Both the position numbers and the translations under genes were made by a program. A stretch of 64,000 bases of DNA, from positions 124,001 through 188,000 of the IMG/VR virus record IMGVR_UViG_3300044821_000131, one strand, 5' to 3'. Below, piece after piece: positions 10,080 through 56,212 of the stretch. The notes below the pieces were generated by a model. That model was not told the origin of the DNA. It was given only the letters and a program-made list of their open reading frames with translations, and searched no databases. Position 1 is the stretch's first letter. Each line of letters begins with the position of its first letter.

Positions 10080-10080
10080 T

Positions 10081-10536
10081 ATGGGTTTTAACAAAGTCCA
10101 TCAGATACCCGGCCGTGACAAGTACGGGCAGATCGACGTGGAAGATGTGCGTCAATTCATGTTCGACCGCACCATTGAAGACAATCCCCTCGAATTGGAT
10201 CTCGTGTTCGACGACGATGAGATCAACCAAGCCTTCCGATTTGCCGCCATGCGCTACAACGAGACGACTCCGTACGTCGACAAGGTTGATGCCGCACATT
10301 TACCCTATGGAATGTTGTTTTTGAATGGTATTGCTTACGGGCTTTATCTGGCCAAGCTTCAGCAATTGGCCCGGCAGGATATTGAGTACAACTCGGGTAA
10401 TATGACGATTGATGCCTTCAAGCGGCGTCTGGATCATTTGCAGAATTTCGTCAAGCTCTTCAAGGAATCATTCGAACAGATGGCCAAGGATCGCAAGATT
10501 AGCATCAACATTGAAAATGCGTTTCGGAGATTTTAG
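10081..10536 (+). CDS. putative head-tail adaptor (neck) protein
   Basis: 151-aa helical protein downstream of the capsid gene; call based on gene order. Confidence 0.45.
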   Translation: MGFNKVHQIPGRDKYGQIDVEDVRQFMFDRTIEDNPLELDLVFDDDEINQAFRFAAMRYNETTPYVDKVDAAHLPYGMLFLNGIAYGLYLAKLQQLARQDIEYNSGNMTIDAFKRRLDHLQNFVKLFKESFEQMAKDRKISINIENAFRRF

Positions 10537-10538
10537 AT

Positions 10539-11315
10539 ATGGCCGCGCCATTTTTAGACGTAAGTGTCTTGCCGATGTACGGACAACTCCGCGCTAGAAT
10601 CATGTGGCGGCTGCAGATCGGATTTGAGTCCGGACGCGTGTTCGTCTTCGAATCTCCCGACGGGCTTAATAATTGGCGCGAGCTTGGCAATGTGCCAAGC
10701 CGCGAGTCAGAATTTCTGGATGAACATCTTATCGCGCGCGGGCGTTTGGATGAAGCCTATTACCGCGTCGTACTAAGAAACAAGGCCAGGACGTACGAGT
10801 CGGATGTCATCAGCACTTTTGGTAAATTAACCCGGTCTGAATTTGGAATGGCCCGGGTTATAATGATGCACGAGTGGGATACTCTGGTACAGTTTACGGC
10901 GATCAAATTCTTCAAGTTGCGCTCTGATGGAGAACGCTGCGTATTGTGTGTGGACAAAGACACGGGGCAAATGATCGGCACCAGTCTTTGTCCAGTGTGC
11001 TACGGCACTGGCTTCGAGGGTGGATTTTACCCGTCAATCGATTCATTCATGCACATTGGCAACATGAGCACCAAGATTCAGTCGGATAGTCGCGAAGGTG
11101 TTGGCTCCTCGGATATGTCAACCATCAAAGTCCGGACCATGTCGTATCCCTTGATGGAGAAGAACGATCTGATAGTCAATCCTTCTGCCGATAAACGATA
11201 CTTGATTGAATCCATAGACTACGGCATGTTTCACGGCAAGGTGCCAGTCTATGCCGAGATGCAGATTCAATTGCTGCCTCGAAACGACATCCGTTATACA
11301 GTGCCTTTGTCATGA
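10539..11315 (+). CDS. putative head-closure/neck protein with a Zn ribbon
   Basis: CVLC and CPVCYGTGFEGGF motifs; position in the neck module. Confidence 0.5.
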   Translation: MAAPFLDVSVLPMYGQLRARIMWRLQIGFESGRVFVFESPDGLNNWRELGNVPSRESEFLDEHLIARGRLDEAYYRVVLRNKARTYESDVISTFGKLTRSEFGMARVIMMHEWDTLVQFTAIKFFKLRSDGERCVLCVDKDTGQMIGTSLCPVCYGTGFEGGFYPSIDSFMHIGNMSTKIQSDSREGVGSSDMSTIKVRTMSYPLMEKNDLIVNPSADKRYLIESIDYGMFHGKVPVYAEMQIQLLPRNDIRYTVPLS

Positions 11316-14900: not shown

Positions 14901-16261
14901 TTGCGGCCAACGGCAGTGTTACACGCTATTCGTCCTCGGCCGCGATCATCGCAGCTTTTGGTGCAAACGACATGGATAATCCGGTGTCCTACGCCGCGAA
15001 TATCGCCTTCAATGGTTCGCAAGGAAAATCGATCTTCGTCTCCAGTGTCGCGACCAACGACTTGGCCGGCTATTCTGCGATTCTGCAGCAGGCGTCCCGT
15101 GTTCAAGGCCCATATGCATTGGTGCCAACCACGACTGATCCGGCCATCGTCGCGCTGTTCAAGACGCATGTGGACTCCTGTTCCGAGTACAACATCCGCC
15201 TCTGGCGCCGAGTATACATCGGTACTACGAGCCCGGGTAAATACGCGGTGTATCAGGCCGACAGCAATGGCAACTCGCTGCAGGCACAAGTGCTTACGAA
15301 TGGCACGGGCAATGTGCGAGTGGTGGCGCCGTTGGCAAAATTCATCACGGAAGAAGTGCAGCCTGGTGATCTGTTCCGCACATATTTCGTTCAGGATGTC
15401 TGGGGCAATTCGGCGTATCAAGAATTTCCGATTCTGTCGGTGCTTGAGAACAACGAGTTGATCTTGTCATCCGGTCCCGCTGTTCCGATTTCGCCGGCTA
15501 TACGGTTCGAGATCTGGAGGAGTGACACGAGCAATTCTCAATGTGTATACGTTGGCAACATCTCGGAAGGTCTTGACGACCGCCGCGTCGTTAACGTCTG
15601 GATCGACAATCCCACGGTGCTCAACTCGGCGGGCCAGTACGTTGTGACTCCGATCTGGAATGTCGCCGCGGAAATCGCCGGTTTGCGCTCGGCGCTTTTG
15701 CCGCAGCAGGGTCTCACTTATACTCAATTGCAGTACTCGGTGACGGCGGCGCCCACGATGTACACCAAGTATCTTGATTCTGATCTGGATCTGGCGGCAT
15801 CGAACGGCGTGTTGATCGCCACACAGGAAACAGTGGGCGGACCGGTGTTCATTCGGCACCAGCTCACCACCGATTCGAATGACGGCAGCCTGTATTATGA
15901 GGATTCGGTCGGCACGAATATCGACAACATTGCGTACACGATTAAGACGGTGTTTCAACCGTATATCGGGCAACGCAATGCCACTCCGGCCGTCGTCGAA
16001 GAATTGGATGTGCGGCTGCGAAACATTCTGAATGGATTCAAAGGCCGTCCGGCCAACCTGTCCATCGTTGGCCCGGCTATCATCGACTACAGCAACCTGA
16101 CGGTGCAGATCGATCCGAATTTCCGGGATCGTATCAACGTCCAAGTCACGGTTCAGATCCCGCTGCCTCTGAATGTCATCGATATCACGTTGACCGCAAC
16201 CACAATTCAAGGCGACGTCTCGATCACCACGACGATTTCAACTCCAACCGTCTCAACCTAA
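11996..16261 (+). CDS. contractile tail sheath protein with a large GxGY-repeat insertion
   Basis: N-terminal YIRPQLLIREV; C-terminal sheath-like AAEIAGLRS, NGVLI, IRHQLTT, YIGQRN, QIPLPLNVIDITL; followed by a tube-sized gene. Confidence 0.8.
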   Translation: MIQGYIRPQLLIREVLQQLPNVDALSLHAFVVGPQFDLFRYYVPAERANMTGAAFAYNSNTNPTAQQIVPFEGLKPYHTVDSSFVKLYAENLEGQSWIAASPPDGVNTADPSNPFSFRLPSLSSPNKILVTLRGANITVTPGTATAPNGLDKQMATVTVNYGGAGYPVNTTFTTPVLNATLGSGAVVQLTTNASGVVTSGVAISPGFGYRAAATFDVPGASAGTNVGTDDATLIPQLQGRPIQPGDICYTTDPFGHTIRRVVQSVQQQNQPATIGAGNNGQFVAAVTNPGETDAFSFANTSAPFDWNINLAKTSLLAVTVTAAGSGYVTAPVVTIPAPTVVNPVTTDNTNAGIAPWAAVQAAATAILSGATVGSVQVTEPGTGYFTGGVTAITVGTRGTSGMYSVANPPIVSIAAPNDTVNGVQATAVAIISPGGGSLPLAGELLAIAVINPGAGYSAPPTVTINGGTATATATVTAAPSITVAGTATVAPVIQSLPSNWNGLVQGSTYQGKYGERYTLTCTQSGTTNALFRVRSSSGGFTADNVVPTVRGNYFYITDASLGGLAVELNAIGGQGLNLGDQFSFVVLGKYLPLIVAPSGQVVTVNIISAGSGYSAGSLTFTAPPAGGRIAAGKYTISAGAIATIVITDPGAGYIYPPVVTASVGTGAMLQAVIGTPQNSCDIAVVAGSTYNGPVNNRYVVTVTQGDTTGGQNSFANAVVRVQDTAGIDAIKSITVQQGVNYNLGSYGLQFIFPNNQVSPSGLSPGTTATATLTQVGGVITAVTVTNPGIGYVVPPVITITTSGGTNAVLEPILNNGTIESILVISGGSGYSGADTLAVAAPTTYQQGLRTGDTYYIDVTAPTAGGAYNTVLLNGPAVDITGWAPTDVLVNLLNVEFRVPYTGAIAQQLDPADAPNLAWTVGASGISVKSYLKIYAPDRNVGYQYLVCQNAPYARLYASWRGLVPSTGTFAANGSVTRYSSSAAIIAAFGANDMDNPVSYAANIAFNGSQGKSIFVSSVATNDLAGYSAILQQASRVQGPYALVPTTTDPAIVALFKTHVDSCSEYNIRLWRRVYIGTTSPGKYAVYQADSNGNSLQAQVLTNGTGNVRVVAPLAKFITEEVQPGDLFRTYFVQDVWGNSAYQEFPILSVLENNELILSSGPAVPISPAIRFEIWRSDTSNSQCVYVGNISEGLDDRRVVNVWIDNPTVLNSAGQYVVTPIWNVAAEIAGLRSALLPQQGLTYTQLQYSVTAAPTMYTKYLDSDLDLAASNGVLIATQETVGGPVFIRHQLTTDSNDGSLYYEDSVGTNIDNIAYTIKTVFQPYIGQRNATPAVVEELDVRLRNILNGFKGRPANLSIVGPAIIDYSNLTVQIDPNFRDRINVQVTVQIPLPLNVIDITLTATTIQGDVSITTTISTPTVST

Positions 16262-37739: not shown

Positions 37740-38386
37740 GATACGCAATTCCAGGTTTTCAGACGCCGGATCATCCCAAGCATGACACTCGGGTATTCGC
37801 GAAGGCTGACGGCACGGTACATTTCATGTTCATGGATGATCGTCCGCTGGATGAAAAATTGCCGCCGTTTTTGATTTTCATCAGCATCGAACATGGACGG
37901 GAAATTGAATTGCAGGCGTTCACACAATCCACACGTTTCGTATATCAAAGAAAACACGAGGACCGAGCCAGCAAGTCTTACTGGTTTAAACTTCGCACTG
38001 ATGAGTTGATAATTCTTCCGGGTACCTATCAAGTTCGGTTTGTAGTAAAAGGTGACGAGTGGGTGAAAAAGTCATTGACCGTACGCAATCACCCGGCGTT
38101 GCCTCGCAACCCAAAACCCGGAGTAGGTGTCGGCCATCGCATGGTGTTAAGTTTCGGTGACCCGAAAGTGGTGGTAGTTCAAGGTGACATGCGGCATCAA
38201 GCTGACAACCTGCCGAAGCCTAACAATTTTGCCTACAACATGGGTACTACCTATTTCGGTAGTCCGCCTCCGAATGACTATCAGACGGGCAGTGTGGGTG
38301 ACGCCTATATTCAGATTATTGGAAATGAGTTTATAGCCGAGTGGATAAAGGTTTCAGGTTATGACACAAATACAGGCTGGGAGTAA
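37736..38386 (+). CDS. hypothetical protein
   Basis: ATGA overlap with the upstream gene; C-terminal [24 protein letters not shown] seen in fibre-type proteins. Confidence 0.55.
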
Positions 38387-41300
38387 TGCCGCACATCTAT
38401 CCATCTTCAGAATGGTTTGCAGACCAGTTGCAGTTGCAGACAACCGCTTCCGGCGTTAAACGTGTTTTAGATGTACAGGATGGAGAGCCTGGCCCGACTG
38501 GACCAACCGGTCCTACTGGTCCTGCTGGCGGCCCGACAGGTCCAACTGGTGCCGATTCTACAGTGCCAGGTCCCACGGGACCGACTGGTCCAACTGGATC
38601 TACCGGTCCCACTGGACCGACAGGACCTACAGGACCAACTGGTGCAGCATCTACCGTTGCTGGGCCAACTGGACCTACAGGGGCGCATGGGACAATTAAA
38701 TTTTATGTTACACTTGACCCGGCGTATACTTCAACCGGTCATGCTGGAACAAGCATAGATCAATTTTCGTATGAGGATTTTATAGCATCGGCAAACGCTA
38801 CTGAAAATAATACTTATTTGCTTGCCGGAGAGCGGACCTTAACTGATGCAGATGCTCAGTTCGTTATTAATCCATTTTCTCATATAATTACTGCACAGTA
38901 TCCTTCGACTCCGTGGAGATTAAATTTAACGATATCAACATACAATCCCATAACGGATAGTCCTCTTGAACAGGGGATTATTTTTGCTCCTACTGTGTTG
39001 GTGGGGGTTTTTGCTTTAACTGAAATGTATTTGAGCGCCTTTATTTGTATATTGTGCGACAACATTGACAAGTCAGTAATAATATCCCCGAACATAAATT
39101 TTCAGCCGGGATCACTGTCTTCGTTTTTTCAGTTAGCTGTAACTAATTCAATTATTTCCAGTTCTACCGGCTCTCCGCCTAATGCCTCTTATGGAGGTAT
39201 AACGGCTTCAAATAGTATATTTACTGCGGCCTTTGCTGCTATGTCCGGTCTGATTGATGGCGGGCAAAATACATTCAGTTGGAATGACTCTTCGGTAACT
39301 TATCCCCTTTGGAATGATGGAATTTTAGCTCATTATAATTTATACAGACGCTACGGGGTTGGGTATGTTGGAAGTTGGGCCTGCATAATAGATTCTGGTG
39401 GCGTTGGTCCAACTGGACCTACCGGCCCTACGGGACCGACTGGCGCTTCAGGAGCAGCTTCAACAGTCGCTGGTCCGACTGGACCTACGGGTCCTACAGG
39501 CGCTTCAGGAGCAGCAAGTACGGTTGCTGGCCCTACCGGTCCAACAGGTCCTACAGGCGCATCTGGAGCGGCTAGTACCGTGGCCGGACCGACTGGTCCC
39601 ACCGGACCTACAGGAGCAAGTGGTGCTGCCTCTACTGTTGCTGGACCAACCGGCCCTACGGGACCAACAGGGGCCAGTGGTGCTACTGGCCCGGGATACA
39701 AAGCGACATCGACGTCGTCTCTGGCTGTCGCTACCGGATCTAAGACATTTGTTTCGCAAACTGGGTTAGCGTATTCGGCTGGAGACCGGATGCGCGCTAC
39801 AAGTAGTGGTACGCCTGCCAGTTATATGGAGGGATTGATCTCGTCATATATTACCGGTAGTTTTGTGACGACGGTTGACACGATTGGGGCGACGGGTACG
39901 TTTGCAGATTGGAATATAAATTTATCGGGCAATGTAGGATTGACCGGACCAACCGGCCCAACTGGTCCCACCGGCGTATCCGGCGCAGCGAGTACTGTAG
40001 CGGGACCTACGGGTCCGACTGGGCCGACAGGAGCTACAGGAGCAGCCTCGACTGTAGCAGGCCCTACCGGGCCGACAGGCCCAACAGGTGCGTCAGGAGC
40101 AGCGAGTACTGTGGCGGGTCCGACAGGCCCAACTGGGCCCACAGGTGCGTCAGGAGCAGCCTCGACTGTAGCAGGCCCAACTGGACCTACGGGTCCGACA
40201 GGGGCCAGTGGTGTTGCTTCCACAGTGGCTGGCCCTACCGGGCCGACAGGCCCAACAGGGGCGAGTGGGGCTGCCTCTACGGTCGCGGGTCCGACAGGTC
40301 CGACTGGACCGACAGGAGCAAGTGGAGCCGCGTCAACAGTGGCTGGACCAACTGGTCCTACCGGACCTACCGGTGCGGGTTATAAAGCCACGTCAACATC
40401 GTCACTCGCGGTCGCGACCGGATCCAAGACGTTTGCCTCGCAGACTAACCTTGCATATTCGGCCGGCGATCGGATGCGTGCTACAAGCAGCGGCACACCC
40501 ACCAGCTATATGGAAGGGGTGATCTCATCGTATGGTTCGGGAAATTTTGTGACGACGGTTGACACGATTGGAGCGACCGGTACGTTTGCAGATTGGAATA
40601 TAAATCTGGCTGGTAACGTCGGTTTTACTGGACCAACAGGCCCAACTGGACCAACAGGGGCCAGTGGCGCCGCCTCGACTGTAGCAGGTCCGACTGGACC
40701 TACGGGTCCGACAGGCGCATCCGGTGCAGCAAGCACTGTAGCAGGCCCTACCGGTCCGACAGGCCCAACGGGCGCTTCAGGAGCAGCTTCAACAGTCGCT
40801 GGTCCGACTGGACCTACGGGTCCTACAGGCGCTTCAGGAGCAGCAAGTACGGTTGCTGGCCCTACCGGTCCAACAGGTCCTACAGGGGCCAGTGGTGCTG
40901 CAAGTACCGTGGCTGGTCCAACTGGACCTACGGGTCCGACCGGGGCTAGCGGAGCAACCGGGCCGGGTTATAAAGCCACATCAACTTCGTCGTTAGCAGT
41001 CGCAACCGGGTCCAAGACATTTGCTTCGCAGACGAACCTTGCATATTCAGCTGGAGATCGGATGCGTGCTACAAGTAGCGGCACACCCGCCAGCTATATG
41101 GAAGGGGTGATCTCGTCATACATTACAGGCAGTTTTGTAACGACGGTAGACACGATTGGGGCTACAGGCACGTTTGCAGATTGGAATATAAATTTAGCGG
41201 GCAATGTAGGATTAACCGGACCTACAGGTCCGACTGGACCGACTGGTCCCACCGGCGTATCCGGCGCAGCGAGTACTGTAGCGGGACCTACGGGTCCGAC

Positions 41301-41835
41301 TGGGCCGACAGGAGCTACAGGAGCAGCCTCGACTGTAGCAGGCCCTACCGGGCCGACAGGCCCAACCGGGGCGAGTGGGGCTGCTTCCACCGTGGCTGGA
41401 CCAACTGGACCTACAGGTCCGACAGGCGCGTCAGGAGCAGCGAGTACTGTAGCGGGTCCGACAGGTCCGACAGGCCCAACGGGCGCTTCTGGTGCTGCAA
41501 GTACGGTTGCCGGACCAACCGGCCCTACGGGACCAACAGGTGCTTCTGGTGCTGCTTCAACAGTTGCTGGCCCTACCGGTCCGACAGGCCCAACGGGCGC
41601 TTCTGGTGCTGCAAGTACCGTGGCTGGCCCTACCGGGCCGACAGGTGCGTCAGGAGCAGCGAGTACTGTGGCGGGTCCGACAGGCCCAACTGGGCCGACA
41701 GGTGCGTCAGGAGCAGCAAGTACTGTTGCTGGACCAACTGGTCCTACCGGACCTACCGGTGCAACAGGGCCGACCGGCCCCGGCGGCGGCGCATCTTCAA
41801 ACTCAATGGCATATCCTTGGTTTTTAGACTTATGA
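38386..41835 (+). CDS. collagen-like tail fibre/whisker protein with three 79-aa repeated domains
   Basis: extensive (GPT)n and [19 protein letters not shown] repeats with globular inserts. Confidence 0.85.
39406..41785 (+). repeat. 57-bp (19-aa) interrupted collagen tandem repeat array
   Basis: unit [19 protein letters not shown] repeated many times. Confidence 0.9.
39694..41202 (+). repeat. three 237-bp dispersed repeats (39694-39930, 40378-40614, 40966-41202)
   Basis: each encodes [19 protein letters not shown]...DWNINL.G. Confidence 0.9.
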
Positions 41836-44800
41836 CAATCATACTCGACACAACCTCAAAATACATAGACGTGGTAATGACCGCACCGCCGGCCACGACC
41901 AACCCGTCGTTCTTCTCCAGCTACGCCGACAACAACGGCACGACTTTTACGGAAGGAGGCAACGATGGTGTGCTCAATGGAACTACGCTGGTAACACTGG
42001 TTGCCGCACCGGCATCGAGCACGCGCCGGACGGTAAAGAAGCTTGGAATTTATAATGCTGATACCGCGCCCGTCACAATTACAGTTGCAATAAATGACTC
42101 AGCCACTCGTCGTATTTTTGCCAAGGTTACGCTGCAACAAAATGAAACGTGGTTGGGTGATGTGCAGATGGACGCGAATGGAAACGTGAAGGGGATTGGA
42201 CCTACTGGCCCTACTGGACCAACTGGTCCAACTGGACCAACTGGTCCTACAGGAGGCACGGGTGCAGTTTCAACGGTCGCGGGTCCGACTGGTCCTACTG
42301 GTCCGACAGGTCCCACTGGTGCTGCTAGTACCGTGGCGGGACCTACTGGTCCAACTGGACCTACAGGTCCCACTGGTGCTGCTTCTACTGTTGCGGGTCC
42401 GACTGGTCCTACTGGTCCGACAGGCCCAACTGGAGCAGCAAGTACCGTAGCAGGTCCGACTGGTCCAACCGGACCTACTGGTGCAGCTAGTACCGTAGCC
42501 GGCCCAACTGGTCCGACGGGAGCCACTGGACCTACCGGGCCGACTGGATCAGCCGCAGTCGTAACTGTACAGGTCATTGCCACAGCGGGAAGTACGACCA
42601 CGCTAACATCTGGAAGTCCTTATCAAACAGATTTTACGGGGACGCTTAATCAGACTTGTGTTTTACCGAATGCTACGACTTTATCAGTGGGGCAGCGTTA
42701 CCAAGTAAACAACAATTCTACTGGACTGATTACAGTACAGGTAAATGGTGGAACATTCTTGGCAACCATAGCTACTGGAATGTCATGGCTAGTTACATTG
42801 TTGACCAATGGTACTACTGCTGGTACGTGGGATTTTGATTGGATAGGTAACGTCCAAGGACGCGGGACTCAAAGTATAGCCACTTCCGGTGGGAGCACAC
42901 AATTGACAGCGACGAGTCATAGACAGCTTATCTTAACGGGTACGGCTACGCATACCATAATACTTCCCGATTGTACTACGCTACCTTTCACGGATTGGTC
43001 TTTTGAAATAGACAATCAATCTCCGCTAACCATTGCTGTGCAGTATTTTGGAGGGGCGGCACTAACGCTTATTACGGGCTACGGGCAGTTAATTTTAAGC
43101 TGTAACTCTATCGCCACACAAGCAGGCACTTGGCAATATCAGACGGACCAGCAGATTTCGGCGGATATTCCGCCAACGCCACAGGTTCTCAACGGACTGG
43201 ATGTTTGGGGGCATAGTTGGCTGGAGAATCCTTTAACGTCACCAACATTTTCAAGCTTGGGCACGAATAGTAACGAATTGTTTGGGCGCATATTTGCAAC
43301 ATCGTGTGGTATCCCAGCATCAAGATATATTCAGCACGCCCGTACAGGAGCCATGCTGGTGGGTGGAACTCGGGCCGCGACAACTGGCGGCGGTAATTTT
43401 GCAAAGATGTTGAACGAACTTGTACGTTCAAGGCAAACTCCGCCGTACGTTCGATCAGGAAATGCGCATCTTATTTGTTGGGGCATTAACGACATTGGGA
43501 ATAACACGGCGGCGAATCAGGCCAATCTCAGAGTTAGCGCGCAGAACATCTTAACGGTGCTAATTTCCAAGGCACGTTCGGCAGCGATCTATAACGCCAA
43601 CCCGACGGGAGCAAACCTTGCATTCGGTGCCAACTGGGTGGCCGCAACTGGTGCCAACGATTTTACGTCGGGCTTCGCCCGTCAATGCACGGTGGTAGAT
43701 TCCGCCGGATCGTCTACTATCACGTTTACAATCCCCATCGGCTATCAAGGCGAACCGATTTGTTTCTGCTTGGGCACGCTTTCAGGCGGATCAATCGTGG
43801 TTACTTGGGGCGGTGGTGCTGGTATTACTGGCACCACAACCTTGAGCGGTATTGGTTTGGCAGCAAACGGCGTCATTCTCAAGAGGATCACAACTCTGAC
43901 CAAGGCGAACGCCGGTCAAACCATAACCTGCGCGGTGACGACCATATCCGCTTCGACGGCCTATTTTGACGGGGTATGGATTGAGGCGTTCAAGGCTGTG
44001 CCTATCTTAGTGTGTAACTGTCCTCGCCTGCCGGAGCATTTAATTACTTGGGCGAGCGGAGCAGGCGTCACTACGGGTGTCAACACCAGTTTTACCGACG
44101 CTAACGTGCAATTCTCAAACACGGGCGGTTGGTATGACGTAGGAGCCACCCTAAACGAAACCGATGCGCAAGGCGCGTTTACTGGAGCGACAAATACCAT
44201 CTCATCCGTCACCAATGCAACCACGGTTGTACTGGGTACGAATGCGGCGGCGGCAAAAACAAATATCCAATACACAATCCAACGTCGAATTCGAGGTTAC
44301 TCCTCAAGTCTATATTGGACAACGAATACCAATTTCACCAGCGCGACGAATCTTAGCCATGCGGCGGCGGATACGGACATCACGAATTGGAACTCGATGA
44401 TAGCAACTGTCGTGGCTCAGTTCGACTCAATGGTTCAAGTTGTTGATCTGGATGCGGCTATTGGAGCAGACGCCACCGTGCCTTCAAACGTTTACACATG
44501 GTTCTCCATGGATGGAGGTCATCTCAACGCACTTGGGCACATGCGCTGCGCTCAAGCGGTTATGCTGGCTGCGATTAACTTGATTGCGCCAACAACCGAT
44601 CCGCAACCATTCGCGAACCTTCAAGAGCAGTCTGTTCCGGTTTATGAGCCGGCAGAGTACCGGCGCGTGATTCGTACGGGCCAGATTTACCTGCCTGATG
44701 GAGCAATCCTTGGTCCGGTGGCAAATTTATACACAGCCGTTCTGGGAGATTGTTTTGCATTTCCGTTTTTTGTGACGGAAGCCGCAGAGTTTTGGACAAC

Positions 44801-45263
44801 CGTGTTCATGGATCAGTCAAACGCTGGAACCTCGCAAATGCGTGTAGCGGTATATGATGATGTGGGCGGTGGAAATGGGCCGCTGGGTTACCCTAGTTGC
44901 GTTCTCATCGACACAGGAGTCGTGGCCATGAACGGTTCGGCGTCGGTAACAAATATAGCCCCGGCTGGAATAGCTCGAACGATCTATCCGGGACTGAACT
45001 GGCTGGTAATCAAATGCGACGTGTTGGGTACAGCATCCACGTTTTACACCATGTTCGGCACTTCTCTACAATTACCGGGATGGAACGGAGCACACTTGGG
45101 CACATCCACAAACTTTCTTCAGCCCATAGCCTACAAGGTAACGGGCGTGGCCGCGGGTGCATTTCCGGGCGTGTTCCCGACTGGCGGATTACTTGTTGGT
45201 TGTAACGTGGGCGCAACTGGCCAGTTTGCTCCCGTTGTAGGCGTAACCCGGACTATTCAATAA
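41832..45263 (+). CDS. collagen-like fibre protein with an SGNH/GDSL esterase domain
   Basis: ATG at 41832 (ATGA overlap); GPT block at about 42190-42550; WGHSW (block I), WGIND (block III), [10 protein letters not shown] (block V). Confidence 0.75.
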
Positions 45264-45267
45264 TAAC

Positions 45268-45296
45268 TTGACAGTTCTTACACCATACAATAGAAC
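45268..45296 (+). promoter_or_regulatory. sigma70-like promoter (leaderless geometry)
   Basis: TTGACA(45268)-N17-TAGAAC-N6-ATG(45303). Confidence 0.45.
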
Positions 45297-45302
45297 CAAA
45301 CC

Positions 45303-46010
45303 ATGTCTACGACCAACGATCTTATTCGCACAAAAATGGGTTTTTATGTCCTGCAAAACGATACACATTTATCGCGCTGGATCGAAAATTCAAATCAGTT
45401 GGTGATCCCTTACAACGTGGCGGAGATCGCCAGTTACGCGCACGTTATTCCTGAAGGTGGTGTGGTAATAAACGCTGGTGCCTGTCTGGGAGATCACACC
45501 GCGGCCTATGCCCATATCGTGGGCAGCCAAGGGCATGTATACGCTTTTGAGCCTCGTCCTGATACCTTTGCAGCCCTCGAAAAGAACATGAGCGTGTTCA
45601 AAAACGTACACGTGCTCAATTGTGCACTGTCCGATACCAACGGTACTGTAAATCTAGTGTTGGACCCTAACGTAGGCGCGTCTTACACTACGTCTGCGGA
45701 GGGTGACGTGAAAATAGAGCCAGCAAAGCTGGACGACTTGTTCCTGACTACATTTACACGTTGCGATTTTATCCACTTGGATGCCGAAGGCTATGAACCG
45801 AGGATACTCTTAGGAGCACAAGAGTTGATCCGGAAATTCCGACCGGCATTGGTCCTTGAACTGTGCGACCACCATCTCAAACGCGCGGGATCGTCCGAAA
45901 CAGAGCTTCTAAGCTTACTGAAAAAATGGGGATACATTGTATTCCCGATTCCCGGTCAGGTGTGTCCTGAGCAACGCGACGTTTTGGCGCTTCCGAGGAT
46001 GGCCCAATGA
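45303..46010 (+). CDS. FkbM-family SAM-dependent methyltransferase
   Basis: INAGACLGDHT, VYAFEP, NCALSD, DFIHLDAEGYEPRILLGA..RPALVLE. Confidence 0.9.
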   Translation: MSTTNDLIRTKMGFYVLQNDTHLSRWIENSNQLVIPYNVAEIASYAHVIPEGGVVINAGACLGDHTAAYAHIVGSQGHVYAFEPRPDTFAALEKNMSVFKNVHVLNCALSDTNGTVNLVLDPNVGASYTTSAEGDVKIEPAKLDDLFLTTFTRCDFIHLDAEGYEPRILLGAQELIRKFRPALVLELCDHHLKRAGSSETELLSLLKKWGYIVFPIPGQVCPEQRDVLALPRMAQ

Positions 46011-47107
46011 GACTGCACCTGCTGGCGCTTCCGAATGTTCAGACGACAAAAGCTTATTCGTTGGATGGGTTCTGTGTCGCCACCATACGCTTTGCCAAGA
46101 TGATGAAAGATATTGGTCACACGGTTATCCTCTACGCTTCGGAAGAAAATGAGGCACCGTGTGATGAACTGGTTACTGTGATCACCAAGGCTGAACAGAA
46201 GGCGCTGAGTCGTGGAGAGTATCAATACGAGGCCATGAATGAGAACTACCCGCTGTGGTCCGTGGCAAACCCACGTATCATCGAAGCAATCAGGGAGCGT
46301 AAACAGCCGCGAGATTTGCTTCTCACAATCGGCGGTGCCTCCCAAAAGGTCATAGCCGATGCCCATCCCGACTTGCCCTGTGTTGAATATTCGATCGGAT
46401 ACATTGCAAGTTTCGCGCCTTACCGCATCTACGAGAGCTGCGCCTGGCAACACTGGTCACACGGACAGCAGCAGAATCAGTTCGGAAGATTCTTCGACGA
46501 AGTCATACCCTATTTTTTCGACGAGCAAGAATTTATACCCCGGGTGAACAAGGAGAATTTCACACTGTATGTGGGTCGGCTGACTCAAAATAAAGGACTT
46601 ACCATCGCCTGTCGCGCGGCGAAACTAGCCGGAGTGCCACTGAAGGTTATAGGGCATGGAGATCCTGCCTTGGTGACGGATGGCGCCGAATATCTGGGAG
46701 TCTTGCCAGACGCGGAACGAAACGATTGGATGTCCCGAGCTTCGTCTGTATTGTGCCCTACTCTGTATTTAGAACCCTTCGGCGCGGTCGCAGTTGAGGC
46801 ACAGCTTTCTGGAACTCCGGTAATAAGCACCAACTTTGGTGGCTTCACGGAGACTGTCGAGCATGGCAAGACCGGATTTCGTTGCGCCTATTTGGGGCAG
46901 TTCGCACAGGCTTTAAAAGAGGTGTACAGCTTGGATCCAAACTACATACGACAACGCGCGGTGGAAAAATATTCCATGCACCGATTGAAGTACTCCTACG
47001 AACGTTACTTCGACAAGCTGTCGATGCTCTGGGATAAGGGCTGGGATACCACTTCAGTCAACGTGTCAGATTTCGCACCGTCGCCGATCGGTAGCGCGCA
47101 ACCGTAG
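46007..47107 (+). CDS. GT4-family (GT-B) glycosyltransferase
   Basis: YVGRLTQNKG; EPFGAVAVEAQLSGTPVIST (E-X7-E); ETVEHGKTGF. Confidence 0.9.
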   Translation: MRLHLLALPNVQTTKAYSLDGFCVATIRFAKMMKDIGHTVILYASEENEAPCDELVTVITKAEQKALSRGEYQYEAMNENYPLWSVANPRIIEAIRERKQPRDLLLTIGGASQKVIADAHPDLPCVEYSIGYIASFAPYRIYESCAWQHWSHGQQQNQFGRFFDEVIPYFFDEQEFIPRVNKENFTLYVGRLTQNKGLTIACRAAKLAGVPLKVIGHGDPALVTDGAEYLGVLPDAERNDWMSRASSVLCPTLYLEPFGAVAVEAQLSGTPVISTNFGGFTETVEHGKTGFRCAYLGQFAQALKEVYSLDPNYIRQRAVEKYSMHRLKYSYERYFDKLSMLWDKGWDTTSVNVSDFAPSPIGSAQP

Positions 47108-49545
47108 AACTTTCGTAGCAGTTCGAGCAGGGCCTCTGCATTCATTAGGATCTCCCGGAACTTGTACATTGAAGCAGAAGCGTGCTTTGTCACCAACTCC
47201 TTATGTACGTCTTGGCGCCGATGGCTGGACAGATTGGCGAAACTCAACACCATTGTACCAGAGGTTGTATCCAATTTGAAATGCTTGGGCAGGTCCTCTA
47301 AGGGTATACCGGTCAGCAGGTCACGAAAAACTGGCATGTCATCATCGAAGACCTCAAATTTCTGATATTGAGTAAAGCGCTCGATCAGCCTGCGGCCCTC
47401 AAGGATATAGTCCACCATAACCGAAGCCTGGTCATCCATCATAGGACTTACTCCGCCACTTCCTTCGCGTACCAGTCGCAGCGTGATCTGGGTGTAGATG
47501 TTGTAGGCCACGGTGTAGATTTGATCATACAGTGGCTTGTCGATCTCTACGCTAAACGGTAGTCCTAATTTACTGAGTGCCATGATGTAGCCGGACCGAC
47601 CTTGGCATCCTTCAGGGTCATGGTATAAGCCGAATACGGGATATGCGGCAAACTCGGATGGAACGAGACTTGTCTCTCGGCGTTTATTTGAGTTGAGATC
47701 GAATGGATGCACCTGGCCGAAAGGGAGAAATAACGCACCCAGCAGTTTAAGGCTGTTGTCATTGTTCGCCAACGAGAGCACAGGAAAGGTGCGCTTAAGG
47801 AAAAGTCGAGCGCACATCGAAGCCATCAGGGCCAGAAACGATTTTATCTGGGGCGTCACCAGATCGGTGGAATTGGATTGGGCGAACTTCTGAAATTTAT
47901 AATGATCCTGCAGGAGGCTGAAAAAAGGATGTCCAACACGCAGAGTTTCATCCAAGCCGGAGATCGAAACCTTCCATGTGGGCGTGTTAAAAATACTGCG
48001 ATTCGAAGTCCAGCCGAGATGTTTGAGGCCTAGTGTACTCGCGTAATTTTGACTCTGAAAGTGAGCACTCAAACTCTGCATGATGTAGGTCCTGGCCGAA
48101 GCATCATAGATGATGGGCTGGAATGCACTCTTGCCTTGGGTGTGTACCAACACCGCGGTTCGGAGCGTAGTTAGAAGATTGGCAGCCTTTTCGGCGGATT
48201 TACGATCAAGACAGAAGGGATATTCTGTGCCATCGACCATCATGGTGCCGTAGTGATAAAGATCGCCATTTTCTTGGAACCACACGCTGGAGAACAAGCG
48301 CAGTGTGAAGTTAGAACCGAGCACAGGCTGCGATGTTTTATTCTTTCGGTACACGTACCCGGCGTTGGTCTCTTCCAGTTCGACGTCGGATACGAAAAAC
48401 GTTTTTGGAGTAATCGTGTGTTTTTTGATTTTCTGTACTATATCGTCGCGCCCAAGATCATGCATCCATCCGATGATGCTATCAATAACGACACGGTCGA
48501 AACGAAGATCATCCAGCACCCGACCCACCTTCGGTGTGATATCGTTCTCGATTGCGACGGACGCTTGGAATTCAGAAACGGCAAATTCCAACCAAGTCTT
48601 ACGTTTGGGTTTCTCCGATCCTTGTAGGATATCATGTTCGACCGACACGTGATAATCGACGAAGCCTCCTCTAAAGCGAGCTATCAATGAAAGGTCGTAG
48701 TCATTGCCGGCGATGAACGTGCCGGTGCGTAATTGCATTTGATGCACTTTGCTGGAAACGTTGAAGTGCGGATGCACTACACCGAAATCGAGGTTGCCAT
48801 AATAGACACCTTGCGAGAATAACTTGGCCGACTGTAACGCGTTACCGGTCACTCGTACATCATCAGTGTCTGGGGCGATTGTGTGTAAGCCAAAGAAAGA
48901 ATGACGCGCATGGTTTATATCGACTACGACAGGGCCACCGTCGTTCAGCGGATATATCACCAACCGGGAGAATGTGTGGTAATTGCTGAAGTAGGGTAAG
49001 ACGATGTAAGTATCACAGGGCTGAAATTTTTCACTGGCGCTGTAGGGTGTCAGAAGTCCATTCAGATCAAGACCTTTGGCCACATAAAGAAAACGAGCTA
49101 CATGGGGAGCTCGAATATTTCGCCGCTCCAACCACATCAAAGCTTCCGGATAAAGTGGGGCACGATCGCGAAGGTTGAGATTCAGTTCGTAGAGCTTCAA
49201 GAACTGTGCTCGTTGAGATTCCAGCTGGCTAACGAAGACCACGCGAGAGGTGTCGGGTTGAACGTTTGCAGACGGCTCGACCATGTCCCCATAGCGGCTC
49301 ATAACGTGGTTTACGGCAAGATCATAGCCTCCCATATGAAAAGCCAGAAAATCGAACACATCCCCGGCTACAAACGAACACTTAGGATCTAGGCTGATGA
49401 ACTCATCGCCTACGAGCCAAATACGAGCATCGGCCAAGTGCGGGTGCTGGATATAGCTATAACCCGAGGCGTCCTTGATATTTAGGCCGAGATCGCGTAC
49501 GACCCGGTAAGGTTCGACGGCCTTAAAAATGTCTTGAATACGCAT
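47005..49545 (-). CDS. primase-like/DNA replication protein (divergent)
   Basis: N-terminal GDVFDFL..YDLAVNHV and ALMWLERRNI resemble the DnaG N-terminal region; SNFTLR and LGWT resemble DUF927-type segments; no clear Walker A. Confidence 0.4.
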   Translation of the reverse strand: MRIQDIFKAVEPYRVVRDLGLNIKDASGYSYIQHPHLADARIWLVGDEFISLDPKCSFVAGDVFDFLAFHMGGYDLAVNHVMSRYGDMVEPSANVQPDTSRVVFVSQLESQRAQFLKLYELNLNLRDRAPLYPEALMWLERRNIRAPHVARFLYVAKGLDLNGLLTPYSASEKFQPCDTYIVLPYFSNYHTFSRLVIYPLNDGGPVVVDINHARHSFFGLHTIAPDTDDVRVTGNALQSAKLFSQGVYYGNLDFGVVHPHFNVSSKVHQMQLRTGTFIAGNDYDLSLIARFRGGFVDYHVSVEHDILQGSEKPKRKTWLEFAVSEFQASVAIENDITPKVGRVLDDLRFDRVVIDSIIGWMHDLGRDDIVQKIKKHTITPKTFFVSDVELEETNAGYVYRKNKTSQPVLGSNFTLRLFSSVWFQENGDLYHYGTMMVDGTEYPFCLDRKSAEKAANLLTTLRTAVLVHTQGKSAFQPIIYDASARTYIMQSLSAHFQSQNYASTLGLKHLGWTSNRSIFNTPTWKVSISGLDETLRVGHPFFSLLQDHYKFQKFAQSNSTDLVTPQIKSFLALMASMCARLFLKRTFPVLSLANNDNSLKLLGALFLPFGQVHPFDLNSNKRRETSLVPSEFAAYPVFGLYHDPEGCQGRSGYIMALSKLGLPFSVEIDKPLYDQIYTVAYNIYTQITLRLVREGSGGVSPMMDDQASVMVDYILEGRRLIERFTQYQKFEVFDDDMPVFRDLLTGIPLEDLPKHFKLDTTSGTMVLSFANLSSHRRQDVHKELVTKHASASMYKFREILMNAEALLELLRKFYGCALPIGDGAKSDTLTEVVSQPLSQSIDSLSK

Positions 49546-49561
49546 TGGGGTTTAATATGAT
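49534..49561 (+). promoter_or_regulatory. sigma70-like promoter (leaderless geometry)
   Basis: TTGAAT-N16-TATGAT-N6-ATG(49568). Confidence 0.5.
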
Positions 49562-49567
49562 TGGTAC

Positions 49568-50629
49568 ATGGATTTTGTAAAAGACTGCTCTGGCCGACAT
49601 TTGCTTCGGATCAACAACTTGGTGACCGTACCGGAATACGTCAAACAAGCCTCGATCCCAGACGACGGCCTCGGTGATCTGCCCGAACACTTGTTCGCAG
49701 ATCCTGTCCGTCGTGAGTTTCCCATTGACAGCGCCGGTCATACGTATCTCAGTCAGGCTTACTGTATGTCTGCCGGAATCGATAGCAAGTCAATTCTAGG
49801 AAACATCAAATCGGCCATGTCCCGCTTTCCCGAGGTGCCGGCGGATATCGCAAAACTGGAGGCGGCCATGGATGCCAGCGTCAAATCCAGTTCTGTTGGT
49901 AATCAGCCACAGTTCGCCGTTTACGTCGATTTCGGTGCCGGCAATCCGGACTCTGAAATCGAGTACGTGAAGTCCGGCGGCGTGAAAGGTTTCTATCCCA
50001 TCAATGATGTAGACCAAGTGGTGGATTCTGCCATTCAGATCGGCAACGAGTCGCATCGCATCCCACTGGAACTCTTTGTTGAAGGTTGTCAGGCGATCTA
50101 CAAATCGGCCAAAGATATGGGTTGCACCGAGCAACTACCGAAGACCATTGTTCAATACGGCGTGGAACGCGTGCCGGATTACGAGTTCGTGAAACAACAG
50201 GCTGAGATCCGAGCGCGTGAGACGAATGACCCGATTTACATCGAACTGGCAGCTTCGGCTGAAGACGACACAGAACACGACTCCAATTTGTGGTCCGAAC
50301 TCTGGGGCAAGGCCGATGCGAGTCACGGCGTCAAGTATGCTCGGCACACGTTGAACCCCTATCAGATATTTCATTCCGGCATGCCCAAATCGGCCTTTGA
50401 AGCGGCTATCAATAAATGGACACTCTTGCATGGCGCCGCCATTCCGGTTCCTGCGCTGCAGGCTCTGAAAGAGGACAGCATCAGCCGTGTGATGTCGAAG
50501 GAAGCCGCGGACAAGGTGCAGGAGGTCCTGAACAAGTCAGCCTCAGTTACCGGGGCGGAATTGGCCAACGAGTTGTCAAAGCTCGATAAACCGATCCAGT
50601 TGGCACTGTTGAAACTGGTCGCCCAGTAA
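49568..50629 (+). CDS. putative head-associated protein with K-x-A motifs
   Basis: VKQAS, IKSA, YKSA, PKSA, NKSAS motifs. Confidence 0.45.
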   Translation: MDFVKDCSGRHLLRINNLVTVPEYVKQASIPDDGLGDLPEHLFADPVRREFPIDSAGHTYLSQAYCMSAGIDSKSILGNIKSAMSRFPEVPADIAKLEAAMDASVKSSSVGNQPQFAVYVDFGAGNPDSEIEYVKSGGVKGFYPINDVDQVVDSAIQIGNESHRIPLELFVEGCQAIYKSAKDMGCTEQLPKTIVQYGVERVPDYEFVKQQAEIRARETNDPIYIELAASAEDDTEHDSNLWSELWGKADASHGVKYARHTLNPYQIFHSGMPKSAFEAAINKWTLLHGAAIPVPALQALKEDSISRVMSKEAADKVQEVLNKSASVTGAELANELSKLDKPIQLALLKLVAQ

Positions 50630-54376: not shown

Positions 54377-56212
54377 CTATCCTGAATACGCTCCCGGGAG
54401 ATTGTAGTTGAAGTTTCCTCGTAACATCGACTCCAGCCGTAGCTTCATGCTGAGATCACTGAACATCGGCTCGCCAATCATAATCTTGCCAAGCATGTAA
54501 GCGTAGTTGAGGGCCTGCAGCGTGTCGTTCGGACGACTGGCACTAGCGCGATAAATAAACGTGTTAGTGCCAGCGTTCCCCGCCTTCTCACCCGGCGCGC
54601 GATACATGTTGAGACAGTCCGTCAAATACTCCTCAGCGTACTCCCAAGAGAAACAGCGTATACGCTTCTGGCGTATAGCATCGAAGGTGAAAGACAATGA
54701 TTCTGTTTTGTTGAGCGACCATTGATTATAGATGTGCGGTCCTTTTGGTTCAGATATGAGGGCTGTAGCGGGACCGACGTAGTTAAAGATAAGATGTTTC
54801 TCCGGCTGAATAAATTCTCGCAATTTGCTATTGTAGACTGCGCCAACACCGAAATCTGAGGCCAAGGCAAATCCCATGTGCTGCTTCCATTCCCGTATGA
54901 TGGTACCAATGATGTCGTCGTAGTTCATACCGGTAAAGCGACTCATATGCAGAATGTCAAAGAGTCCGTTTGAAGTGATACCAAGTACGACATGTACGGT
55001 CGTACTGATCTTAGTGTGAGACATAGGTTGGTAGTCACTGCCACCCCAGTCACAACCAGACACGATGTATTGATATTTTTTTGCTTGGGCGTTACGCTTG
55101 AGCAGCCCAACGTCCTTACCGAGCGTGCAGATGTCTTGTAGTTGTTGCCGAGTTATTTCACGCTCACCTTCTTCGGTTGGGACACCAAGAATTTCCTGCA
55201 GGAACTTTCGATAATCGCCTTTGTTCTTCCGCTCATAGATCTTGGACCAGCGATAAGGATTCTGGATAACGGACGGTACGATCAACTGAGGAATGTGAAA
55301 GCCATACTTCTTGGCTTCAAACGCCTGCATGTTGGAATGAAGAAATCTACCAGCGCGAACGTTCAGGAGCTTTCCACATTTGGCACAGCAAGGTCCCTCC
55401 GGTTGAATCATGTCCATCACGCCATGTTCCGGGAGTGGAATGTTCTCGTGACCGGACGGGCAGGTCATGACCCATACGCCACCTGAAGACTCTCCGTACT
55501 TCTTCTCAAGAAACGTGTCGGTGGTGAGCGAGGTGCCGGCGTAAAAAGTGATCGGGTATTCCGAGGCCGATTGTACCTGCTCGACTTCGATTTCCAGATC
55601 GGGATCGAAGTCCTGACTTTCATCGAATAAGATTTCATCGGAACTTTTGCCGCGTACATTAGACGCACTACTGAGCACGTAGGCGAGTTCGATCTTCGAT
55701 CCGTTCGCAAATTCTTTCAAGTGAAGATTCTGTCGGAGTTTGTAGTCCGGCTTGTAGTCCAGCTGCGCGCGCACCATTTCTTGTAAACGGTTGGCATAGG
55801 TCTCAAGCTGTTGACTGCGAGGACTGATGTACAGACTGGAGAATCCTGGGAACAGGCGTGTCAATAGGAGTTGACGCGCGGCGAAACTTGTGGATTTACT
55901 GATCTGTCGAGACCCCCGCAACACGGTGAACCCGCCGAGATGAATATTAAAGATTTGAAACGAAAAACCGTAATCACTAAACAGGAGCGGACGGTCTTTC
56001 GGGTAGCGCGGCCAGTAAAAACCGGTTAAGAACACCATGTTGAAATTGCAGAATTTCAAGAAATCCATCAAGGCGTCATTGAACTCCCGGGCGCCGGCAG
56101 CACTTATTTTTGATCGTTCGTAGAGGCCGGACAGTTCATTGCTGCGCGTGACGAGCTGGTGCCGAAACTCACCATCAGTGCGAAGTTTATAATCGAGGTC
56201 GAGATAAGGCAT
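54377..56212 (-). CDS. terminase large subunit
   Basis: RGSRQISKST (Walker A-like), VRGKSSDEILFDESQD (Walker B), AGTS coupling motif, Zn ribbon CPSGH..CAKC, nuclease GCDWGG and PND. Confidence 0.85.
   Translation of the reverse strand: MPYLDLDYKLRTDGEFRHQLVTRSNELSGLYERSKISAAGAREFNDALMDFLKFCNFNMVFLTGFYWPRYPKDRPLLFSDYGFSFQIFNIHLGGFTVLRGSRQISKSTSFAARQLLLTRLFPGFSSLYISPRSQQLETYANRLQEMVRAQLDYKPDYKLRQNLHLKEFANGSKIELAYVLSSASNVRGKSSDEILFDESQDFDPDLEIEVEQVQSASEYPITFYAGTSLTTDTFLEKKYGESSGGVWVMTCPSGHENIPLPEHGVMDMIQPEGPCCAKCGKLLNVRAGRFLHSNMQAFEAKKYGFHIPQLIVPSVIQNPYRWSKIYERKNKGDYRKFLQEILGVPTEEGEREITRQQLQDICTLGKDVGLLKRNAQAKKYQYIVSGCDWGGSDYQPMSHTKISTTVHVVLGITSNGLFDILHMSRFTGMNYDDIIGTIIREWKQHMGFALASDFGVGAVYNSKLREFIQPEKHLIFNYVGPATALISEPKGPHIYNQWSLNKTESLSFTFDAIRQKRIRCFSWEYAEEYLTDCLNMYRAPGEKAGNAGTNTFIYRASASRPNDTLQALNYAYMLGKIMIGEPMFSDLSMKLRLESMLRGNFNYNLPGAYSG

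Follow-up and report, generated by a model that had tools for sequence, protein, structure and literature searches.

A candidate cassette for glycosylating and methylating threonine-rich collagen-like tail fibres in a phage genome

Enzymes that glycosylate collagen-like proteins have been described in bacteria and in a giant virus. In C. difficile, SgtA O-glycosylates threonines within the Gly-Pro-Thr (GPT) repeats of BclA3 using uridine diphosphate N-acetylglucosamine (UDP-GlcNAc) as donor, as shown in vitro, and the enzyme is encoded beside bclA3 (PMC7157674). The GPT region of Bacillus anthracis BclA carries O-linked rhamnose-anthrose oligosaccharides, of which anthrose is a methylated sugar (PMC9614988; PMC8968730), while Mimivirus L230 both hydroxylates lysine and glucosylates hydroxylysine in the collagen-like protein L71 (PMC9614988). 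Glycosylation of capsid proteins by phage-encoded glycosyltransferases (GTs) is reported for two mycobacteriophages, Che8 and Rita (Freeman et al. 2023, as cited in PMC11256854). Here we analysed a stretch of 64,000 nucleotides (the window), bases 124001-188000 of IMG/VR record IMGVR_UViG_3300044821_000131, a complete virus record of 204,257 bp with direct terminal repeats, in which two collagen-like fibre genes, fib1 and fib2, are followed by genes for an FkbM-family methyltransferase and a GT4-family glycosyltransferase (Table 1). On the balance of probability, comparative genomics suggests that these four genes form a cassette for virion-fibre modification, in which threonines of the fibres would be O-glycosylated and the attached sugar methylated. 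The narrower claim, that the GT acts on collagen-like proteins, is probably correct.

The locus resembles each of these systems in part. As with SgtA and BclA3, a glycosyltransferase gene sits immediately beside a GPT-rich collagen-like gene, and a common host donor would serve. SgtA is, however, an inverting GT-A enzyme (beta-O-GlcNAc) with a TPR domain that acts on a bacterial spore surface, whereas the phage enzyme has the GT-B fold of GT4, an EX7E motif and no TPR domain, and thus departs from the GT-A-plus-TPR pattern. Because the folds and architectures differ, we regard the two as analogous rather than homologous, although an SgtA-like GT2-TPR architecture does adjoin a collagen gene and a GT4-methyltransferase at one related locus (L328, see below). 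BclA is likewise a GPT-rich collagen with a methylated glycan, which in the phage is proposed, but the phage genome has no PF01370 or PF00483 genes and no genes for deoxy-sugar or anthrose-type biosynthesis, and kinship to BclA in enzyme or sugar is not implied. The mycobacteriophages would share with this phage the use of phage-encoded GTs to modify their own structural proteins covalently; their targets, however, are major capsid proteins without collagen repeats, and their GT genes lie near the right genome end, away from the target gene. Mimivirus encodes collagen-like proteins together with an enzyme that glycosylates them, as is proposed here for the phage, but it is a eukaryotic giant virus that uses hydroxylysine, whereas threonine is the likely acceptor in the phage and the window encodes no hydroxylase.

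A physical parallel is offered by the cuticle collagen of Riftia pachyptila, in which galactosyl-threonine at the Y position of the Gly-X-Y triplet stabilises a hydroxyproline-poor helix (Mann 1996 and Bann 2000, as cited in PMC10141479). Glycosylated Gly-x-Thr in place of hydroxyproline would supply a physical rationale for the benefit proposed below, although the Riftia protein is an animal extracellular collagen with no sequence relation to the phage fibres. At the level of the enzyme, the cyanobacterial tll1591 and BGluT (PDB 7fg9, 8x3q, 5zer, 9v0l) are compact GT-B enzymes like the phage GT, and are retaining and UDP-glucose-dependent, as is predicted for it, but their acceptors are sucrose/alpha-glucan and tetrahydrobiopterin and they have no collagen context. 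GtfA-GtfB (4pqg) is a GT4-type GT-B system that adds O-GlcNAc in the cytoplasm to Ser/Thr of repetitive, extended adhesins; it differs in being much larger, in its inserted domain, in its requirement for the GtfB partner and in being only a distant match. The present case departs from these precedents in its enzyme family (GT-B/GT4), in having phage tail fibres as the proposed target, and in breadth, as the clade is large and reaches across phages and bacteria.

The evidence that carries the proposal is the linkage between the GT and collagen genes. Any stop-to-stop open reading frame (ORF) with 45 aa or more in runs of at least five triplets, and with a Thr fraction at Y of at least 0.3, was mechanically counted as a collagen ORF. 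At the first five GT loci inspected, including those of the cultured Synechococcus phages S-CBWM1 and S-CAM7, a Gly-x-Thr collagen ORF adjoined the GT in every case. In S-CBWM1 the collagen fibre is gp121 and the GT gp122, and in S-CAM7 gp014/gp015 are paired with the GT gp016. Eighty IMG/VR loci were then collected with a GT profile and dereplicated to 36 clusters at 80% GT identity. The collagen ORF lay no more than 600 bp from the GT in 25 clusters (19 upstream on the same strand, four downstream on the same strand, two convergent) and within 3 kb in a further five, the window among them (fib2 ends 744 bp upstream of the GT); in two the nearest was found at 3-4.7 kb. Collagen ORFs were missing from the other four clusters, all contig-edge loci with an upstream flank of less than 1.8 kb. 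Near the GT the density of collagen ORFs was 0.60 per kb, against 0.0088 per kb beyond 3 kb (about 70-fold), giving a Poisson P of about 5e-37 that overstates the independence of the loci because they are related by descent and by cassette transfer.

Linkage was graded with GT similarity. When loci flanked by 3 kb or more of sequence on either side were pooled, 51 of the 53 with GT profile scores of at least 420 bits had a collagen ORF no further than 3 kb away, as did 11 of 18 between 330 and 420 bits and none of the 10 below 250 bits, which serve as an internal negative control. A tree of 76 dereplicated sequences placed the window GT in a clade of 24 rows with 100% support, of which 21 are collagen-linked, two stand at contig edges and one has its collagen gene at 4.7 kb. 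The surroundings of the GT are otherwise unrelated (DnaB and endonuclease VII, RNA polymerase subunits, tail genes), and when the other neighbours within 4 kb were clustered, no family occurred at more than 6 of 46 dereplicated loci.

The family is large and extends beyond phages. A word-indexed search returned 911 GT homologues, and an exhaustive search of a 50%-identity library returned 1,238 representatives at E<=1e-30; back-translating the single GT protein and scanning IMG/VR with it gave no matches, and an alignment was required. A profile scan of 185,579 species genomes located the GT family in metagenome-assembled genomes (MAGs) of Saccharibacteria, Acidimicrobiaceae, Rhizobiales/Kaistia, Oscillospiraceae, Anaerolineae and Acidobacteriota, again with Gly-x-Thr collagen ORFs nearby. 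The contigs that carry some of these matches measure from hundreds of kilobases to megabases. Weak matches in MAGs of Lentisphaerae and Planctomycetes had no nearby collagen ORFs. MAGs of Candidatus Saccharibacteria/Saccharimonadales (L291-L312), which are CPR bacteria, have more than 15 GT homologues at 38-44% identity, several of them 1-3 kb downstream of large Gly-x-Thr collagen ORFs and some on contigs of 260-490 kb; either a prophage or a cellular surface protein may be involved.

Members of the GT family are also joined to methyltransferases. At one locus (L015) a collagen ORF is followed directly by a GT (58% identical) fused to an FkbM domain (37% identical); of the GT loci, only the window has an adjacent FkbM gene and only L015 a fused one. 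The closest FkbM homologues (54-57% identity; L166 and L167) lie within collagen and GT clusters, which are placed on the plus strand just before tail genes and comprise a 990-aa collagen gene with 65 GPT triplets, an orthologous GT (60% identity), a Methyltransf_24/CmcI-like enzyme, two GT2 genes and a second GT4. Sixty of the 150 best GT-family representatives are multi-domain (partner segment of at least 120 aa), and in 34 of these 60 a methyltransferase domain is present, of the FkbM, Methyltransf_24/CmcI-like or class-I 23/25-type; other fusions carry a GT2 domain. Triples of collagen, GT and methyltransferase also occur at L073 and L328, and probably at L322 and L331. L328 (3570-9758, on a 4.68-Mb contig of an Acidobacteriota MAG) is chromosomal; there a 568-aa Gly-x-Thr collagen gene is accompanied by a GT4-Methyltransf_25 fusion and by a gene for a GT2-TPR-GT2 protein. 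Since several unrelated methyltransferase families have been joined to the same GT, these fusions argue that the product of the GT, a sugar hydroxyl, is what would be methylated.

Some of the long fusions in the protein library are possibly gene-calling artefacts. One is P0178, whose 177-aa N-terminal extension (L433 2-2804) was rejected as such: a 582-aa collagen ORF in another frame ends just before the true GT start. Fusion of collagen to the GT was likewise rejected, as none of 65 long representatives contain collagen runs.

FkbM and Methyltransf_24/RfbT-like enzymes methylate O-antigen sugars, and RfbT matches turn up among the GT fusion partners. The enzymes might accordingly be imagined to act on the host surface (O-antigen, capsule or S-layer glycan) to block superinfection or hide receptors, with the fibre linkage reflecting a shared hypervariable host-recognition region. 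We consider this unlikely, even though published work treats GTs in phage fibre regions as modifiers of DNA or O-antigen and modification of the host surface is their customary reading (PMC7029224, PMC10202952), the genome holds a further GT2/acyltransferase/methyltransferase cluster and fib2 may carry a putative esterase for host glycan. Such a role predicts linkage to receptor-binding genes generally and not to Gly-x-Thr collagen specifically, whereas the 51 collagen-linked loci among the 53 close homologues span unrelated phage backbones and chromosomal loci, with no other conserved neighbour. In its structural model the GT is a small, soluble GT-B protein without a membrane segment. Known phage seroconversion systems are, in contrast, membrane-bound.

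The Gly-x-Thr repeat itself is the only constant partner of the GT. Across the partner proteins the median share of Thr is 66% at Y but 1% at X, where the residue varies between Pro and Ala, although the Thr-at-Y filter used to call partner ORFs slightly inflates this statistic. In bacterial collagen-like proteins the reported share of Thr at Y is 32% across all bacteria and 48% in Gram-positives (PMC8968730). The non-collagen domains of the partners are a mosaic of 8 similarity components, none of them universal. This bears on whether the GT might glycosylate virion proteins at Ser/Thr-rich non-collagen modules, or on other structural proteins, instead of at GPT triplets. The non-collagen parts of fib1 are 30% Ser+Thr, the glycans of mycobacteriophages are on capsid proteins (PMC11256854) and the GT of the window is nearest to fib2, which has few triplets; with Gly-x-Thr runs as the common denominator among partners that otherwise vary, however, we give this alternative slightly less credence than action on the host surface.

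The preliminary description had reported over a hundred GPT triplets in the two fibre genes, and 128 were counted (103 plus 25). In fib1, globular modules of about 75 aa divide the collagen into five blocks. A 19-aa unit (57-bp repeat), in which five triplets are followed by the four-residue break STVA, makes up most of this collagen. The 24 copies of this unit are 97.9% identical as peptide, 72.9% identical as DNA and 30% identical at third codon positions. Because the peptide is so much better conserved than its third codon positions, the repeat, threonines included, appears to be under strong purifying selection and not the outcome of recent slippage. The scrambled codons (39397-41793) may also guard the array against recombinational collapse. 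Gly-X-Y runs total 489 aa in fib1 and 87 aa in fib2, and since most of them consist of just five triplets interrupted by STVA, a continuous triple helix does not seem assured in either protein.

Assignment of both proteins to tail fibres follows from homology to PHROG families and from position in the tail module, and the counterpart in S-CBWM1 is annotated as a tail fiber protein. The PHROG matches, largely through the collagen part, are to many tail-fibre families for fib1 (down to 5.8e-99) and to tail-fibre and tail families for fib2 (to 2.3e-27); the Pfam Collagen score is 111 bits for fib1 and 27.2 bits, exactly the cut-off, for fib2. The start of fib2 was placed at 41832, where an ATGA overlaps the fib1 stop, and a mechanical TTG start at 41181 was rejected. 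The N-terminal 120 aa of fib2 are common to the GT-linked collagen proteins of L021 and L022, and its C-terminal half is large and globular. Motifs read from the fib2 translation (GHSW at aa 460, GINDIG at aa 551, DGGHLN at aa 894) are spaced like blocks I, II and V of SGNH/GDSL esterases; the region gave a weak, sub-threshold match to Lipase_GDSL_2 (E 0.08) and no sequence match in the PDB. We tentatively suggest that fib2 may bear a putative deacetylase acting on host glycan.

The GT matches PF00534 (62.6 bits, cut-off 26.4; 4.2e-17), PF13692 (60.3 bits, cut-off 27) and phrog_3408 (7.7e-57). Its AlphaFold model (predicted local distance difference test 90, predicted TM-score 0.87) is a compact GT-B protein of two Rossmann domains, and Foldseek returned at least 500 GT-B matches in the PDB, the best with TM scores of 0.73-0.79. 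Residues G190, R191, K196 and G197 of the donor-binding motif, and E256 and E264 of the EX7E motif, are invariant in alignments of 19 and 24 sequences. By profile and fold the nearest solved proteins are tll1591 (E 7e-35) and BGluT (1e-26), both UDP-glucose alpha-glucosyltransferases with 20-22% identity; BshA, MshA and a methylmannose-polysaccharide mannosyltransferase come next, and GtfA (4pqg) ranks 45 with 11% identity. This supports a soluble, retaining, UDP-hexose-dependent enzyme, with anomeric retention and donor judged by analogy from these UDP-glucose-using relatives; the acceptor would not be readable from such a fold.

Relatives of this kind raise the prospect that the GT and FkbM are cargo without action on the fibres, and that their product is a methylated oligo- or polysaccharide, either free or linked to lipid, or else a small molecule bearing a sugar, for example a methylmannose-polysaccharide-like or sucroglucan-like product. 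tll1591 glucosylates sucrose/alpha-glucan and BGluT tetrahydrobiopterin, the methylmannose-polysaccharide mannosyltransferase is among the fold matches, a divergent FkbM and GT pair exists without a collagen gene, and a UDP-glucose dehydrogenase adjoins one GT-family member (L432). The tight, orientation-independent adjacency to collagen genes and its loss outside the clade would nevertheless go unexplained, and we rate free-glycan synthesis as a minor possibility, a shade below the two alternatives above.

The assignment of the methyltransferase is clear from PF05050 (4.1e-20, 73.1 bits, cut-off 22.7), TIGR01444 (9.5e-23, 81.2 bits, cut-off 37.7) and phrog_8156 (1.5e-29), and a search of the PDB with the family profile gave FkbM 2py6 (E 1.3e-9). 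The glycine-rich S-adenosylmethionine (SAM) loop NAGACLGDH (aa 57-65) is followed by AFEP (aa 81-84), which has the acidic residue expected after strand 2, and G59, A60, G63, D64, H65 and E83 are invariant across 26 homologues. From the GT-methyltransferase fusions and its adjacency to the GT, the enzyme is predicted to O-methylate a sugar hydroxyl. A metagenome scan with the FkbM profile found only distant relatives (at most 41% identity) on mostly short contigs. A divergent FkbM and GT pair without a collagen gene recurs on phage contigs (L092 9719-12789, with L093, L094, L100-L103, L108 and L109), and at L092 a sigma-70 region-4/helix-turn-helix protein lies between the two.

That GT4 and FkbM would co-occur with GPT-collagen genes was the check proposed in the preliminary description. 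It succeeded for the GT (51/53 at >=420 bits) and failed for FkbM (0/80 IMG/VR loci). Its idea that the fibres bear a methylated glycan therefore divides: synteny upholds the glycosylation half, and the methylation half, which FkbM linkage does not bear out, is rescued by the GT-methyltransferase fusions and by L166/L167.

The observation that the window holds no nucleotide-sugar genes extends to the whole genome for two families, NAD-epimerase/dehydratase (PF01370) and nucleotidyl-transferase (PF00483), and because the complete genome lacks both, sugar donors must be host-derived. Glycosylation of the phage DNA against restriction, as by the T-even glucosyltransferases, is a generic assumption for phage GTs (PMC10202952, PMC9614988) but highly improbable here, since the complete genome has no gene of the thymidylate-synthase/dCMP-hydroxymethylase family (PF00303; control genomes were positive) and a T4-style route to glucosylated DNA is not evident from it, the GT stands at the end of a tail-fibre module and is linked to collagen genes and not to nucleotide metabolism, its closest relatives are sugar and small-molecule GT4 enzymes, and even where a homologue lies near DnaB and endonuclease VII (L004) a collagen ORF adjoins it.

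We therefore return to modification of the fibres, for which we infer the following acceptor, donor, linkage, order of steps and benefit. Late in infection the soluble GT4 would take a nucleotide sugar from the host, most likely UDP-glucose judging from the nearest solved relatives, and transfer the hexose, with an alpha linkage as the probable outcome, onto threonine hydroxyls at the exposed Y position of the Gly-x-Thr repeats in both fibre proteins. FkbM would then use SAM to O-methylate the attached sugar, and enzymes encoded elsewhere in the genome (GT2, an acyltransferase, a second methyltransferase) may lengthen the glycan or add to it. What the phage would gain is probably a hydroxyproline-free triple helix that is stabilised and hydrated, an altered fibre surface, or both; shielding and mimicry, which the preliminary description also put forward, would be further possible purposes.

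Several points weigh against this reading, beyond the limits on the two statistics already given. The case is one of guilt by association, drawn from comparative genomics. Co-transcription of the enzymes with the fibre genes is an assumption, as promoter and terminator scans were at chance level and uninformative on operon structure. Within the window the GT is 744 bp from fib2, with the methyltransferase between, and 4.1 kb from fib1; its nearest solved relatives act on small molecules or sugars and not on proteins. Among FkbM homologues at 80 IMG/VR loci (27-45% identity), none had a Thr-rich collagen ORF; some close homologues adjoin Cro-like regulators (L168 and the P0140 contig), and at nine of them, of the L092 type, FkbM is accompanied by a divergent, long-branch GT but by no collagen gene. 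In the converse direction, a (GPT)5 DNA pattern picked out 120 IMG/VR loci, and this GT was encoded at none of the 65 with at least 1.5 kb downstream of the collagen gene. Pairing of every GPT-collagen phage gene with this GT was thus rejected, and modification is, on this count, not needed for GPT fibres in general. The GT appears to imply a collagen partner, but most Gly-x-Thr phage fibres appear to do without the GT.

More tentatively, and with confidence somewhat short of even, we propose that the large GT4 clade (1,238 representatives) is a dedicated 'collagen threonine glycosyltransferase' with interchangeable methyltransferases, acting on phage fibres and some bacterial surface proteins. 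Its members have so far been annotated as cell-wall enzymes, auxiliary metabolic genes, DNA-modifying or O-antigen-modifying enzymes. Our literature search, which was partial in coverage and leaves an earlier description possible, turned up no publication that connects these GTs with collagen-like proteins of phages, and decoration of phage fibres with methylated sugars has most likely not yet been described. For GTs in phage fibre regions the analysis offers a specific, testable alternative for one large family, namely modification of the adjacent collagen-like fibre. If this is true, tail fibres would join a very short list of glycosylated phage virion parts, and the GT would be a genetic marker predicting which of the common Gly-x-Thr phage fibres are glycosylated. 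Such fibres would then split into glycosylated and naked ones, with consequences for host range, stability and antigenicity, and the finding would matter for how phages recognise receptors, persist in the environment and are recognised by immune systems. Collagen with (methyl)glycosyl-threonine would be a microbial counterpart of the stable hydroxyproline-free helix of Riftia, and with just two enzymes, recombinant collagens that lack hydroxyproline could be glycosylated in a simple way. The question is directly answerable, since the Synechococcus phages S-CBWM1, S-CAM7 and ACG-2014f are carriers available in culture.

Table 1. Genes, collagen blocks and motifs of the candidate cassette, in window coordinates
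Feature	Position	Strand	Details
fib1, collagen-like tail-fibre protein	38386..41835	+	1149 aa; 103 GPT triplets; ORF and Pfam Collagen match (1.7e-32)
fib1 collagen block 1	38482..38697	+	aa 33-104
fib1 collagen block 2	39397..39696	+	aa 338-437; built of 19-aa units ending STVA
fib1 collagen block 3	39928..40380	+	aa 515-665
fib1 collagen block 4	40612..40968	+	aa 743-861
fib1 collagen block 5	41200..41793	+	aa 939-1136
fib2, second fibre protein	41832..45263	+	1143 aa; 25 GPT triplets; one collagen block
fib2 collagen block	42198..42554	+	aa 123-241
fib2 region with SGNH-esterase-like motifs	43209..44531	+	GHSW, GINDIG and DGGHLN; tentative assignment
FkbM-family SAM-dependent methyltransferase	45303..46010	+	235 aa; 39 bp (45264-45302) after fib2
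GT4 glycosyltransferase, GT-B fold	46007..47107	+	366 aa; 4-bp overlap with methyltransferase
GT donor-binding motif GRLtqnKG	46574..46597	+	G190, R191, K196 and G197 invariant in family
GT EX7E motif, retaining GT4 signature	46772..46798	+	E256 and E264 both invariant

The proposed cassette closes a long run of structural genes on the plus strand. The gap after fib2 and the overlap of the enzyme genes on the same strand are as the preliminary description gave them, and its statement that the pair ends the structural region also held: the run stops at the GT because the next gene, an 846-aa ORF (47005-49545), is on the minus strand. The two genes converge, and their 3' ends overlap by 103 bp (47005-47107), confined to a low-confidence, non-conserved C-terminal tail of the GT. 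Upstream, the gene at 33247-36858 matches baseplate-wedge and virion structural families in PHROG; this giant protein and that at 11996-16261 have repeats in common with such families. Across the whole 204,257-bp genome there are only two collagen-like genes, one Glycos_transf_1 gene and one FkbM gene, and all of them are in the cassette. With a single GT4 gene in the genome, its placement by chance no more than 1 kb from the two fibre genes has a probability of about 1%, and the arrangement exceeds chance expectation.

The source phage is far from known phages and has no sequenced close relative. With 43500-49600 as query, blastn found nothing in 50,697 phage records. Its large terminase (54377-56212, minus strand) has a best identity of only 25.6% to any phage record, and most of its large proteins, including almost all of the large structural ones, match no PHROG family. 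The whole stretch is contained in full in a peat metagenome run.

A second cluster of glycan-related genes lies about 80 kb upstream, outside the window (G000:C1 at ~78.9-90.7 kb; L289 903-12689). It comprises a hexapeptide (LpxD/NeuD-like) sugar acyltransferase, two GT2 genes, a weak NodZ-like match, a GT2_4 gene and a Methyltransf_24/rhamnosyl-O-methyltransferase-like gene, an enzyme set that resembles the contiguous L166/L167 cluster. We speculate that it may extend the same fibre glycan.

Other genes recur beside the GT at related loci. At L432 (125-2712) a UDP-glucose/GDP-mannose dehydrogenase lies directly 5' of a 619-aa GT-family member, which hints at a uronic-acid donor in some lineages. 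Paralogues of a 2-oxoglutarate-Fe(II) oxygenase resembling prolyl 4-hydroxylase (PF13640; 11 copies at three loci) adjoin the GT and collagen genes at L002 (S-CAM7; 9978-10574), L041 and L064 (for example L064:5190-5846), a hint that some fibres are hydroxylated too. A conserved protein of about 107 aa, belonging to no Pfam family, is encoded between the collagen gene and the GT at L003 (9466-9789) and L166 (3975-4298). Its homologues occur within 4 kb of the GT at L014, L018, L021 and L022 (for example L022:11457-11777), and it may be a candidate fibre chaperone or GT adaptor.

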